A stretch of 64,000 bases of DNA from sequence record NC_031927.1. The stretch is one strand, 5' to 3'. Of the stretch, positions 18,144 to 34,278 are shown in pieces. Numbering within the stretch: position 1 is the stretch's first letter; every line of letters begins with the position of its first letter. The translations under genes were made by a program, and so were the position numbers. The notes below the pieces were generated by a model that saw only the letters and a program-made list of their open reading frames with translations, did not search any database and was not told where the DNA came from.

Positions 18144-18217
18144 GCCTCAGTAGCTCAGTGGAATAGAGCATCGCTCTTCTAAAGCGTTGGTCGCTGGTTC
18201 GAATCCAGCCTGAGGCG
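18144..18217 (+). tRNA. tRNA-Arg(UCU)
   Basis: Acceptor gcctcag/ctgaggc; loop CT-TCT-AA; GTTCGAATC T-loop; CCA not encoded. Confidence 0.95.
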
Positions 18218-18243
18218 TCGTCCAATTACTAACATATATAACA

Positions 18244-18399
18244 ATGGGATTACTTTCAGAAAGCGATTACACTCACGCAATTCAAGCACTTGAATACTAC
18301 CTTGAAGTTTGGGGTAGTCAGTTGAGTGATGTTGAGTATATGGAAAAGGAAGCTCTTCTCCGTTGGCTCTACATCAGCAAATCAAAACTAAGTAGCTGA
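18244..18399 (+). CDS. Small hypothetical protein (51 aa, not in ORF track)
   Basis: MGLLSESDYTHAIQALEYY... open frame between tRNAs. Confidence 0.45.
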   Translation: MGLLSESDYTHAIQALEYYLEVWGSQLSDVEYMEKEALLRWLYISKSKLSS

Positions 18400-18457
18400 T
18401 TACACAAGACGATCATCCATATTTACGCTATACTATCCACATACACAACAAAGACAG

Positions 18458-18649
18458 ATGGCTAAGCAACTCCGTATGGATCTCATTGATGAGTATTACA
18501 AGCTATACCGTGAGCGGACTCTATGCCGTCACACCAAAGATTTTAGAGACAACTACGAAAAGATTAGTGAGCTGTGGGTAGATTTTTCAGAAGAAGAGCG
18601 TATCGCAATCAATATACGCTTCATCCAAGACAACTTGAATAAGTTCTAA
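18458..18649 (+). CDS. Small hypothetical protein
   Basis: 63 aa between tRNA genes. Confidence 0.55.
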   Translation: MAKQLRMDLIDEYYKLYRERTLCRHTKDFRDNYEKISELWVDFSEEERIAINIRFIQDNLNKF

Positions 18650-18678
18650 TCTTGTGATATAATACGGTCAACAGACCT

Positions 18679-18751
18679 GCTCCTTTAGCTCTCTGGTGAA
18701 AGCACTCCGCTCATAACGGAAGAAAGGTCAGTTCGATCCTGACAAGGAGCA
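18679..18751 (+). tRNA. tRNA-CAU (elongator Met or Ile2)
   Basis: Acceptor gctcctt/aaggagc (paired 1:72, so not initiator); loop CT-CAT-AA; GTTCGATC T-loop. Confidence 0.9.
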
Positions 18752-18780
18752 TTGACAATCATCACCTTCTCTGGTATGAT
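18752..18780 (+). promoter_or_regulatory. Sigma70-like promoter (TTGACA-N17-TATGAT) upstream of tRNA-Ala
   Basis: Perfect -35 and 17-nt spacer. Confidence 0.8.
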
Positions 18781-18792
18781 TGTTTCATCTTC

Positions 18793-18868
18793 GGGGAATT
18801 AGCTCAGTTGGTAGAGCGCCTGCTTTGCAAGCAGGATGTCAACGGTTCGAGTCCGTTATTCTCCACCA
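18793..18868 (+). tRNA. tRNA-Ala(UGC)
   Basis: GGGGAAT acceptor, loop TT-TGC-AA, encoded CCA. Confidence 0.97.
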
Positions 18869-18873
18869 ACCAT

Positions 18874-18946
18874 TGCTCTGTAATTCAATCGGTAGAATGC
18901 CAAACTGTTAATTTGGAGGTTGCAGGTTCGAGTCCTGCCGGAGCAG
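18874..18946 (+). tRNA. tRNA-Asn(GUU)
   Basis: Acceptor tgctctg/cggagca; anticodon arm ccaaa-CT-GTT-AA-tttgg; GTTCGAGTC. Confidence 0.93.
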
Positions 18947-18961
18947 TTTAAACTTAATATT

Positions 18962-31368: not shown

Positions 31369-31797
31369 ATGGTAGATTACGAGAATCCCTGGATGTATAA
31401 AGGGAGACCTTTTACTACCGAAAAGATAAAAAATTATTATGGGTTCTTATACCTTATTGAGAATAAGCTCACCGGTAGAAAGTATGTGGGTAGAAAGTAC
31501 TTTGTACAGAAGAGAAAACCAAAAGGTGGTAAGCGAAGAGTAACTTCTGAAAGTGATTGGAAAAAATATTATGGTTCTAACGACCAGTTAAAAGCTGATG
31601 CGAAGGAGTTTGGTAAAGAAAACTTCAGTAGAAAGATACTATCTCTACACGAAACTGTAGGTAAAACTAACTACGCAGAGACAGAAGCACTCTTTAAATA
31701 CAATGTTTTAAGAGCAAAGTTAAAGGATGGTACTGCTGCATACTATAACGACAACATCCTCGGTAGGTATTACAGAAGGAACTATTGGGTGGACTAA
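31369..31797 (+). CDS. GIY-YIG-like nuclease
   Basis: YGFLYLIEN..TGRKYVGRK; WKKYYGS; E...LF; YNDNI. Confidence 0.8.
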   Translation: MVDYENPWMYKGRPFTTEKIKNYYGFLYLIENKLTGRKYVGRKYFVQKRKPKGGKRRVTSESDWKKYYGSNDQLKADAKEFGKENFSRKILSLHETVGKTNYAETEALFKYNVLRAKLKDGTAAYYNDNILGRYYRRNYWVD

Positions 31798-31820: not shown

Positions 31821-32528
31821 ATGAAGATTGAACTTAAAAACTTTTTTAAGTATTACAATGATGGCTTACCTCATCACAAAAATTCTATTGATAAACTAGC
31901 TGAAAAAATTGCTAAATTAGCACCAGAACTTTTGGAAGATGATGCCGAGTGGGTTTCTATCTACAGAAATCAATCTGTTGATAACGATGGCGACCAAGAA
32001 TTAGTATTACCTGTTCTCTACTACCCGCAGACAGACAACTACACACAGCCCGAGAGGACGTGTAATTCATCCGCTTGTGCTATGGCTTTGGAATACTTCA
32101 AGCCAGGTACTCTACACGGTCCTAAAGGCGATGATGAGTATATTAGGGAGGTCTTCCAAGTAGGAGATACTACCGACCATTGGGTACAGACAGAGATTTT
32201 AAGAAATCACGGCATTGAATCTACATTCAAATATGATTTAGATTTTGATGACCTTGATAAAGAATTAGAAAACCGTAGACCTGTTGTTATTGGTATCCTC
32301 CACAGGGGACCTCTATATGCCCCGTCAGGCGGTCATATGATTGTTGTGATTGGTAGAACCGAGAAAGGTGACTACATCGTTCACGACCCATATGGAGACC
32401 TCTACGATGGATATACAAGCACCGTATATAATGGTAGCTCTGCTGTATACGAAAGAAGAGTATTAGAAAAGAGATGGACGTGCGACGGTAGTCGTTCAGG
32501 ATGGGGTAGAGTTTTTTTTCCACAGTAG
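31821..32528 (+). CDS. C39-family cysteine peptidase, probable endolysin N-terminal part (235 aa short form)
   Basis: QTDN...CNSSACAMAL; GGHMIVVIG; YIVHDPYG; ATG 31821 after CTAAATA. Confidence 0.85.
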   Translation: MKIELKNFFKYYNDGLPHHKNSIDKLAEKIAKLAPELLEDDAEWVSIYRNQSVDNDGDQELVLPVLYYPQTDNYTQPERTCNSSACAMALEYFKPGTLHGPKGDDEYIREVFQVGDTTDHWVQTEILRNHGIESTFKYDLDFDDLDKELENRRPVVIGILHRGPLYAPSGGHMIVVIGRTEKGDYIVHDPYGDLYDGYTSTVYNGSSAVYERRVLEKRWTCDGSRSGWGRVFFPQ

Positions 32529-32558
32529 AACCACCTAACTCTATCTTAGGGGTTCTAC
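32513..32558 (+). other. Candidate -1 programmed ribosomal frameshift signal
   Basis: In-frame T_TTT_TTT (32513-32519), 5-nt spacer, hairpin gtagaacc-a-cctaa/ttagg-ggttctac (32525-32558). Confidence 0.75.
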
Positions 32559-33037
32559 CAAATTCAGGCATACAACTAATCAAAGAATTCGAGGGGCTTC
32601 ACGTCCTAAGAAACGATGGGTATATTCATGCCTATCCAGACCCACTCTCAGGAAATCTACCAATCACTATTGGCTGGGGTTCCACTAGAAAGTTGAATGG
32701 TTATCCGTTCAAGCTTGGAGATAAAATAACCAGGTCTGATGCTGATGAATTACTAATACATCAGTTGAAGGATGAATACTTATCTACTCTAGAAAGAGAA
32801 GTACCTTACTGGAGAGAAATGAACGACAACCAGAGAGGAGCTTTGTTGAGCTTCGCATATAATCTGGGAGCACATTTCTATGGTAGTGCTGGTTTCAGCA
32901 CAATAAGCCGTGTTCTTCGGGAAAAGGAGTGGAATAAAGTCCCTGATGCGCTATACTTATACCGAAACCCAGGCACAAGCGTAGAGGCAGGCTTGACCCG
33001 CAGACGCATTGCCGAAGGTGATCTTTGGAAATCTTAA
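32519..33037 (+). CDS. GH24 phage lysozyme domain in the -1 frame, without its own start codon
   Basis: STVEPPNSILGVLPNSGIQLIKEFEG...AYPDP...TIGWG...NQRGALLSFAYNLG...GLTRRRIAEG; catalytic Glu at 32591 lies upstream of the ORF-track TTG start (32693). Confidence 0.85.
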   Translation, partial: STVEPPNSILGVLPNSGIQLIKEFEGLHVLRNDGYIHAYPDPLSGNLPITIGWGSTRKLNGYPFKLGDKITRSDADELLIHQLKDEYLSTLEREVPYWREMNDNQRGALLSFAYNLGAHFYGSAGFSTISRVLREKEWNKVPDALYLYRNPGTSVEAGLTRRRIAEGDLWKS

Positions 33038-33038
33038 T

Positions 33039-33458
33039 ATGTTATTACCACTGTTTAAAGAAAGGTTCCAGGGCTTCTGGAACAACCAACGCCAAGCATA
33101 CAATGACCCTCGGGGGCAGGCATTAGTTCATGTTATCCATGAGTTTGATGTTGATAGGTATCTATGTTCTTATAGGTATCGTCGTCAAAAAAATCCATAC
33201 AGATATTTTGAAGCAACATTACACGATAACGATGGTCAGGTTATTTTAAAAAACCCCGTCCACGATATTATGTTTTATGTTCAGAATGGATGTTTTGTAA
33301 CCAAGTCTAATTTCATTAGCCGTGGCGTGCGTTATATCAATGAAGCCTATCTAGGTGAAAACTATTACCACGTCAAAGACCAAGGTTTTGATTTAAAAAC
33401 TGGGAAGCAAATTTGGGGTCTTGAAGGTGATAACTTCTATGAGTTTGATAGGACTTAA
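33039..33458 (+). CDS. cpeT: CpeT/CpcT-family phycobilin lyase-like protein
   Basis: F.G.WNNQRQAY..P...A; KDQGFD...GKQIWG...FYEF; ATG 33039. Confidence 0.7.
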   Translation: MLLPLFKERFQGFWNNQRQAYNDPRGQALVHVIHEFDVDRYLCSYRYRRQKNPYRYFEATLHDNDGQVILKNPVHDIMFYVQNGCFVTKSNFISRGVRYINEAYLGENYYHVKDQGFDLKTGKQIWGLEGDNFYEFDRT

Positions 33459-33654
33459 TCCTCTCTTCTAAATATTTGATGCAGTCGTCTAAGTTGTTAA
33501 TTCTTTTGTAATCCATAAGTAGACGCTTATAGTACTGTCACACATCGCATATCATATGCGAGTTCATATGCTATTATTTATATGTTCTTTAATTGAACCG
33601 TGGTGTGTTGAGGGGGTTGTTCCCCCCATCAAATGTCGAATTCTATTACTTAAC

Positions 33655-34278
33655 TTGAAATTATTTACCCAATTTGCAGCAGTTGCAACTTCACTAACTC
33701 TGTCTAGCCTAGCTACATCAACTGTCCCTCAGCTACCCGCTATGGCAGTTGAGACCGAAGAAAAGGCTACTGTTGTTGAAGCTGAGCCTGTTGTAGAAAC
33801 TGAAACGCGGTGGGTTCTCCCTACAGCTAATCATGCAGAGACTAAAGTTCTCAATGCATTACAAGATCGTGGTATTGAAGACCGAAATGCTCTTGCTACT
33901 GTTATGGGAAACATCAAGCAAGAGTCAAAGTTTAACTCTAACATCTGTGAAGGTGGTGCTCGGGTGTCTTATCATGGTTGCCGTAGTGGTGGTTATGGTC
34001 TAATTCAATGGACCAGCATTGGACGCTATCGTGGTTTAGGTAGTCACGCTTATCGTATTGGGATGGATCCGTCCACGGTAGATGCTCAAATTTCGTTTCT
34101 CTTTACCGAAAGGCAATGGAGAGGAATCGAGCCATCACTCAAAACCAACGGTCAAAGCATTGGTTTCTATATGGGAAAAACATATTACTGGCTTGGCTGG
34201 GGTATACATGGTAATCGTACTACTTACGCTTATCAATATGCTTCAAGGCTTACTAGCATTGAGGTTCCCGTCACATAA
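33655..34278 (+). CDS. Phage tail-type lysozyme / lytic transglycosylase with N-terminal signal-like segment
   Basis: ALATVMGNIKQES, GYGLIQWT, QISFL; probable TTG start at 33655 giving MKLFTQFAAVATSL. Confidence 0.75.
   Translation: MKLFTQFAAVATSLTLSSLATSTVPQLPAMAVETEEKATVVEAEPVVETETRWVLPTANHAETKVLNALQDRGIEDRNALATVMGNIKQESKFNSNICEGGARVSYHGCRSGGYGLIQWTSIGRYRGLGSHAYRIGMDPSTVDAQISFLFTERQWRGIEPSLKTNGQSIGFYMGKTYYWLGWGIHGNRTTYAYQYASRLTSIEVPVT

Follow-up and report, generated by a model that had tools for sequence, protein, structure and literature searches.

We examined a 64,000-nt stretch (record NC_031927.1; hereafter, the window) of Synechococcus phage S-CAM7, a T4-like cyanomyovirus (Kyanoviridae, Mazuvirus), the region being 100% identical to isolate 0910CC49 (KU686212 / NC_031927), in which the end of an open reading frame (ORF) for a C39-type peptidase overlaps, in the -1 frame, a stretch encoding a GH24 lysozyme. 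With a probability that we put at roughly 70%, -1 programmed ribosomal frameshifting (PRF) at this overlap would yield both a peptidase and a peptidase-lysozyme from one gene. An initial annotation, made from the letters of the window, had offered the same explanation, and it gains support from conservation of the junction within the S-CAM7 lineage, from the low ratio of nonsynonymous to synonymous substitution rates (dN/dS, 0.084) in the lysozyme part, and from analogous cassettes in S-PM2 and other phages. The recoded gene is homologous to a single, 405-aa, in-frame coding sequence (CDS) of ACG-2014f, and we regard the frame change in S-CAM7 as programmed rather than as damage.

GenBank entries at the S-CAM7 locus consist of a 235-aa hypothetical protein (C490910_210) followed by a 90-aa "lysin," and a 72-aa "lysin" remnant is annotated in two other S-CAM7 isolates. 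The catalytic Glu is missing from the annotated 72-90-aa "lysin" ORFs of the S-CAM7 and S-PM2 public records, and a joined CDS is annotated in none of the S-CAM7, S-PM2, and S-PM2d database records examined.

The peptidase-lysozyme junction of S-CAM7

The peptidase and lysozyme pieces were searched separately against Pfam, and the frames were never joined. The upstream piece matched Peptidase_C39_2 (PF13529) over the full model (E 1e-11; 45.8 bits vs. a cut-off of 24), and the downstream piece matched Phage_lysozyme/GH24 (PF00959; E 3e-19; 70.1 bits vs. a curated cut-off of 22.3). Residues Gln70, Cys81/Cys86, His172, and Asp189 of the peptidase were at least 97% conserved among 133 relatives, as were Glu25, Asp41, and Thr50/Thr56 of the lysozyme piece among 147 relatives; the catalytic Glu sits in an FEG motif, just 5' of the Pfam-matched GH24 stretch. 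A PDB sequence search matched the lysozyme piece to GH24 lysozymes and endolysins of solved structure (best E 2e-9) and gave chance-level matches only for the peptidase piece, whose single-sequence AlphaFold model had a mean pLDDT of 33.

The sequence and ORF list placed the end of the C39 ORF, a T_TTT_TTT heptamer, and a hairpin exactly where the initial annotation had put them (Table 1). The slippery run is phased X_XXY_YYZ in the 0 frame, with its heptamer inside an eight-base T-run, and is separated by 5 nt from a stem-loop whose 5' arm contains the 0-frame stop. The 13-bp stem-loop has a predicted energy of -16.7 kcal/mol, compared to -6.5 +/- 2.3 kcal/mol for dinucleotide shuffles (z -4.4; 1/200 shuffles as good), and ranks within the top 0.7% of 46-nt windows in the 64-kb window. 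The ORF list and Pfam also bore out the description of an open -1 frame that encodes a complete GH24 domain and offers no start before the catalytic Glu. Indeed, the first ATG, GTG, or TTG in this frame is a TTG at 32693, which lies 3' of the catalytic Glu codon, so that starting there would delete the active site, as had been pointed out. S-CAM7 isolates contain no ATG, GTG, or TTG in the -1 stretch upstream of that Glu. A G-rich stretch 6-17 nt upstream of the slippery run consists of the codons of an invariant Gly-Trp-Gly-Arg, and coding constraint is inseparable from RNA constraint there; a Shine-Dalgarno-like stimulator is an optional feature of -1 PRF cassettes. The cassette matched no Rfam family, and a promoter scan found promoter-like sites at chance level. 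The hairpin was also considered as a terminator and rejected, as no T-tract lies 3' of it.

The junction is identical in three S-CAM7 isolates obtained at two Californian sites in two years, and the same run, phase, and outer 8-bp stem occur in independently assembled metagenome contigs with identities to S-CAM7 of 99% (L005), ~90% at the protein level (L006/L172), and ~80% (L173). When the window was compared with L006 (dS 0.43-0.59), dN/dS was 0.16 in the peptidase part and 0.084 in the lysozyme part, where dS was 0.59 and no stops were found. Since this start-less lysozyme part is under purifying selection, we take it to be translated. The offset might instead stem from a homopolymer miscall, or from a recent inactivating frameshift in an ancestrally fused gene with loss of the lysozyme, as homopolymers are error-prone in some sequencing chemistries and in the clades nearest to, but outside, the S-CAM7 lineage (62-70% identity) the gene is an in-frame fusion. 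However, the same run and offset occur in three isolates and three metagenome contigs down to ~80% identity, and the lysozyme retains its catalytic residues together with the low dN/dS and lack of stops described above. We therefore give artefact or decay almost no credence.

Table 1. Coordinates of the proposed recoded lysin gene and its parts in the S-CAM7 window.
Feature	Position	Strand	Basis or description
Entire recoded peptidase-lysozyme gene (proposed)	31821..33037	+	One -1 frame change, no internal stops in either part
0-frame ORF, 235-aa peptidase-only product	31821..32528	+	ORF list, GenBank record
Peptidase_C39_2 (papain-like Cys peptidase) domain, residues 64-191	32010..32393	+	Pfam, residue conservation
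Recoding cassette (outer bounds only): frame overlap, phased slippery run, 5-nt spacer, stem-loop	32510..32558	+	
Candidate stimulatory stem-loop	32525..32558	+	8 bp, bulged A, 5 bp, 7-nt loop
-1-frame open stretch, linker and lysozyme	32510..33037	+	Stop codon at 33035-33037
Phage_lysozyme (GH24) domain	32624..33016	+	Pfam, PDB sequence relatives, residue conservation

Architecture and RNA structure of related loci

Loci were collected from IMG/VR, JGI/ENA metagenomes, and cultured phages and were anchored on the Gly-Trp-Gly-Arg at the end of the peptidase domain; after removal of duplicates, 147 distinct loci remained. The lysozyme part lies in the -1 frame and overlaps the end of the peptidase ORF in 60/147 loci, while 43/147 are in-frame peptidase-lysozyme fusions, 44/147 have peptidase and lysozyme as separate genes, and 0/147 have the lysozyme part in the +1 frame with overlap. 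A phased X_XXY_YYZ heptamer is present in 53 of the 60 -1-overlap loci, in which the overlap is only a few codons long. The heptamer is A_AAA_AAG in 46/53, S-PM2 among them, T_TTT_TTT in 6/53 (the S-CAM7 lineage), and C_CCA_AAG in 1/53. Seven -1-overlap loci lack a heptamer, and those examined have their own ATG.

Heptamer background and codon choice were counted in the first 106 distinct loci. Elsewhere in the genes, 0.41% of codon positions had a phased heptamer, and 0/37 separate-gene loci had one. At the A_AAA_AAG site, AAA-AAG encoded Lys-Lys in 35/35 cases but made up only 7% of the Lys-Lys pairs found outside it in these genes; the preceding codon (Val, Ala, Glu, or Thr) ended in A in 35/35 vs. 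a background of 37%. The 0-frame stop is directly 3' of the heptamer in 33/41 loci. In S-PM2 (p156/p157; L085 1795-2978), A_AAA_AAG is followed at once by a stop; the stem has 11 bp (-16.4 kcal/mol), and the lysozyme is in the -1 frame. What is annotated as the "putative lysin" of S-PM2 is a fragment of 72 aa that lacks the catalytic Glu, and the S-PM2d record (LN828717; L252) has the same split as the original S-PM2 record. The sole C_CCA_AAG locus (L148, metagenomic) has a stem of 12 bp that is rich in GC (-21 kcal/mol), and its linker is longer and rich in Ala and Pro. In freshwater S-CRM01 (L150; HQ615693), the lysozyme homolog was matched in two pieces under two "hypothetical protein" annotations, a pattern that may reflect a further split gene.

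Stems start 2-8 nt after the heptamer in 37/41 loci. At least eight unrelated stem sequences occupy this same position, and stems persist although loop length varies by more than 24 nt. Structure was scored as the z-value of the 60 nt downstream relative to shuffles, which for the relatives were mononucleotide shuffles. The median z was -3.8 for out-of-frame loci with the heptamer (n = 53), -2.5 for in-frame loci with the heptamer and an immediate -1 stop (n = 8), -1.0 for fused loci without the heptamer (n = 31), and -0.8 for separate genes (n = 51). Heptamer-bearing and heptamer-less loci differed with a Mann-Whitney p of 2e-17, a value inflated by relatedness among the loci (see below). Within stem families, pairing was kept in 95-99% of cells, falling to 1-52% when the partners were slid. 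The initial annotation had named homologs that are always fused in frame and have no hairpin as an outcome contrary to its proposal; the family looks otherwise, given the heptamer in most -1-overlap loci and the strength of the structure downstream of it.

The same comparison bears on whether the lysozyme could be a separate protein, made from a non-canonical start or by termination-reinitiation after the peptidase stop. Peptidase and lysozyme are, after all, separate genes in 44/147 relatives. A natural control is provided by S-SRM01, which retains the heptamer but lacks a stem (-3.6 kcal/mol), and in which an ATG of the lysozyme overlaps the stop. Its lysozyme starts only ~11 residues before the catalytic Glu, and this short, ATG-started form indicates that a free lysozyme is viable. 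Moreover, in 19 of the 41 heptamer loci a TTG or GTG occurs in frame 5' of the catalytic Glu, most of the TTGs being the Leu codon of the conserved L-I-K-E-F-E-G motif. However, 22/41 have none, nor does any S-CAM7 isolate, and a restart site would be occluded by the stem-loop. Separate synthesis also leaves unexplained the phased heptamer, the fixation of synonymous codons, and the occurrence of the stem only where there is a heptamer. We consider two separate proteins quite improbable, and independent initiation of the lysozyme in S-CAM7 appears unlikely.

A second polarity was found among the in-frame loci. Eight in-frame fusions have a heptamer in phase, after which the -1 frame meets a stop within two codons, and in 7/8 this heptamer is A_AAA_AAG and a strong stem begins 5-6 nt downstream. 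In-frame cassette loci are L004 3046-4263 (ACG-2014f), L017, L020, L022, L029, L042, and L235, and they include the ~45-isolate ACG-2014f group (L004, L022). For the ACG-2014f type, the 0 frame is predicted to give the fusion and the slip to give the peptidase alone. Out-of-frame and in-frame cassette loci would then make the same two products with the major and minor species swapped. Two in-frame loci (L036, L226) have the same stems as closely related out-of-frame loci, and either one cassette occurs naturally in both frame versions or the run differs among some assemblies; stems of out-of-frame relatives are also present in a few further in-frame loci. Downstream of the Gly-Trp-Gly-Arg anchor, the heptamer occupies codons 1-3 in S-CAM7, codons 4-6 in loci of the S-PM2 type, and codons 8-10 in ACG-2014f. 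Since these positions differ among the three groups, the cassettes do not seem to be simply inherited but to have arisen or moved within one linker.

Proposed mechanism and competing explanations

In the mechanism that we propose, most ribosomes would read the 0 frame and stop two codons past the slippery run, producing the 235-aa C39-type peptidoglycan peptidase. A fraction would pause at the stem-loop 5 nt downstream and slip back one base. As in canonical -1 tandem slippage, two tRNA-Phe would re-pair perfectly on the U-run, and the -1 frame would then be read through a ~20-residue linker into the GH24 muramidase, giving a two-domain lysin of ~405 aa. In this mechanism, the muramidase would exist solely in fused form, and how often ribosomes slip would determine how much of it is made. 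We infer the slip, its frequency, the fusion product and the fixed ratio that the initial annotation had proposed, the role in lysis, and the usefulness of two products; the pair could serve control of muramidase dose or form a mixed-subunit enzyme. Four clustered phage tRNA genes (Arg-TCT, Met-CAT, Ala-TGC, Asn-GTT) lie at window positions 18144-18947 (+). Since none of the four decodes Phe or Lys, the slippery codons would be read by host tRNAs, unless further tRNA genes lie outside the window.

The eight-base T-run also raises the possibility that RNA polymerase slips on it, in which case ordinary translation of variant-length mRNAs would produce the fusion, and slipping ribosomes would contribute little or nothing in S-CAM7. 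Runs of at least eight A or T are classical slippage sites, and the window holds only two T-runs of this length. Yet a strong stem-loop 5 nt downstream, with an outer helix conserved to ~80% identity, has the geometry of a ribosomal stimulator, and we know of no role for a stem-loop downstream of a polymerase slip site. In addition, the run is phased exactly as a tandem-slippage heptamer, and the sister cassettes A_AAA_AAG (only six A's) and C_CCA_AAG are too short for efficient polymerase slippage. Published work speaks on both sides. U_UU.Y ranks second among slippery tetramers (PMC4066793). In E. coli genes, U7 and A7 are underrepresented whatever the frame, which slippage may explain (PMC4066793), and U_UUU_UUU is a comparatively weak ribosomal shifter in E. 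coli (PMC5009743), both of which favor the polymerase. We judge polymerase slippage improbable as the main source of the fusion; the two processes are not mutually exclusive, and slippage of the polymerase on the T-run may contribute in S-CAM7. The conserved downstream stem nonetheless argues that the ribosomal route matters there.

Several observations weigh against programmed ribosomal frameshifting in S-CAM7 or limit the case for it. U_UUU_UUU shifts far less than A_AAA_AAG in E. coli (PMC5009743), and U7 runs are prone to transcriptional slippage and indels (PMC4066793). In the literature searched, we found no protein, ribosome-profiling, or transcript evidence for any member of the family. 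Within the 64-kb window, 17/236 XXXYYYZ heptamers have comparable structure nearby by chance; since the local pattern is thus not overwhelming, the case rests on phase, domain continuity, and comparative data. The S-CAM7-type cassette is known from three distinct junction sequences only. Its inner 5-bp helix is not kept in L173, which builds an inner helix from other bases, and the changes in its outer stem are wobble-compatible only, with no double compensatory change. The initial annotation had called for an alignment of relatives that would show heptamer, spacer, and hairpin conserved with compensatory changes. Heptamer, spacer, and stem proved to be conserved, but compensatory changes were lacking in the S-CAM7 lineage, and covariation was significant in one of three A_AAA_AAG stem families, the largest (0/500 reshuffles); the other two gave 198/500 and 500/500 reshuffles, their changes being wobble-compatible and uninformative. 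We therefore rely on the evidence between families and on the association of structure with the heptamer, for which the use of mononucleotide shuffles in the relatives is itself a weakness. Architecture also tracks phylogeny (13 parsimony changes vs. ~73 for shuffled tips). Since the loci are related, with ~9-13 independent architecture changes and hence an effective ~10 independent events, p-values are inflated. Finally, 31 fused loci without a cassette and 44 separate-gene loci indicate that this particular pair of products is not a universal need.

Genomic context, known systems, and implications

The ORF directly upstream of the lysin gene (window 31369-31797, +) encodes a SegE-type, GIY-YIG homing-endonuclease-like protein (Pfam E 9e-49). 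It is labeled "NAD synthetase" in several relatives, which looks like a propagated misannotation, and in ACG-2014f a ferrochelatase gene lies between the SegE-type ORF and the lysin gene. Downstream, a small ORF (window 33039-33458, +) starts 1 nt past the lysin stop and, over just 45 residues, weakly matches the CpeT/CpcT bilin-lyase family at its C-terminal end (E 2e-7). A 240-aa ORF (window 33556-34278, +) with a hydrophobic N-terminal region and a Phage_lysozyme2 ("phage tail lysozyme," PF18013) domain follows. Annotated as hypothetical, it is a second peptidoglycan-hydrolase-like gene 0.5 kb downstream of the recoded lysin. No holin was identified near the S-CAM7 lysin locus.

The partner of the C39 peptidase varies: S-CAM7 has GH24, PSS2 has a glucosaminidase, and S-N03 and S-B68 have another C-terminal domain. 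In PSS2 (L091 1303-2529) the glucosaminidase is N-terminal and the C39 peptidase C-terminal; S-N03 and S-B68 (L089 and L090) combine the peptidase with a C-terminal half of ~200 aa, and S-CREM1 (L253 1492-2673) has a lysozyme at the N-terminus of a 393-aa protein. Judging from these arrangements, module swapping around the C39 peptidase is of the kind typical of modular endolysins. The gene is called endolysin in several database records, and we consider "endolysin" a reasonable functional label for the S-CAM7 gene, although a virion-associated role is also possible.

The proposed mechanism has well-known counterparts. The closest in polarity to S-CAM7 and S-PM2 is orfA/orfAB of the IS3 family (IS911, IS3), in which a short 0-frame product is extended in the -1 frame by a second catalytic domain. 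Both systems have a phased heptamer (often A_AAA_AAG in IS3), a stem-loop, and a downstream ORF without its own start; unlike the IS3 family, the S-CAM7 gene encodes a cell-wall hydrolase of a T4-like cyanophage, uses T_TTT_TTT, and is known here from sequence alone. The polarity of S-CAM7 is opposite to that of E. coli dnaX (tau/gamma), where A_AAA_AAG precedes a stem-loop by ~5-6 nt, just as in the in-frame relatives of the ACG-2014f type (L004). These relatives copy the dnaX logic, with a long 0-frame product and a -1 stop within two codons that would give a truncated one. Among double-stranded DNA phages, the tail chaperones of the lambda gpG/gpGT type and T7 10A/10B are conserved frameshifts that yield two proteins sharing an N-terminus at a set ratio; these are structural or assembly genes, whereas the S-CAM7 gene encodes peptidoglycan hydrolase domains.

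Other lysin genes also give two products. Enterococcal Lys170 and clostridial CD27L and CTP1L reportedly yield a full-length lysin plus its C-terminal binding domain via an in-frame internal start; the likeness to S-CAM7 would lie in one lysin gene that gives a full-length enzyme and a single-domain product sharing its sequence. Unlike in these, the extra product of S-CAM7 would be the N-terminal, catalytic peptidase, formed by termination in the 0 frame. Shearman, in 1994, is said to have reported a phage lysin split over two overlapping frames; its host, phage, and enzyme family are unrelated to those of S-CAM7. The authors of PRFect (PMC10885494) point to this 1994 work on a Lactococcus phage when they name lysins among the genes "known to contain a frameshift." The initial annotation had considered frameshifting in a lysis enzyme unusual, and indeed the literature searched contained no established case of -1 PRF in peptidoglycan hydrolases and did not describe recoding for S-PM2 or for any cyanophage lysin. 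The mechanism is thus known; the gene family, its breadth, which includes a model phage, and the coexistence of both polarities are apparently unreported.

In one linker, we found three heptamer types at no fewer than three codon positions, at least eight stems, and both polarities, alternating with plain fusions and separate genes. We lean, if only slightly, toward the view that a recoding switch that is mobile in evolution is present throughout this cyanophage lysin family, which spans abundant marine and freshwater T4-like phages, among them S-PM2, a model for 20 years, with selection acting on the dose ratio of peptidase to peptidase-muramidase. If so, selection on this ratio could time or grade lysis or build a mixed-subunit lysin. 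The S-CAM7 locus and its relatives would also provide the first well-supported case of programmed frameshifting among phage peptidoglycan hydrolases, and annotations of a "truncated lysin" would be wrong; what the S-CAM7 and S-PM2 records present as a "hypothetical protein" and a "lysin" is probably one lysin of 405 aa with two domains. A family with both PRF polarities, fused and split forms, and at least 9-13 switches would offer a natural series for studying the origin and turnover of frameshift sites. Control of lysis in marine cyanophages is poorly understood, and a dose of the only muramidase-bearing product that is set by ribosomal slippage would provide a testable hypothesis for it.

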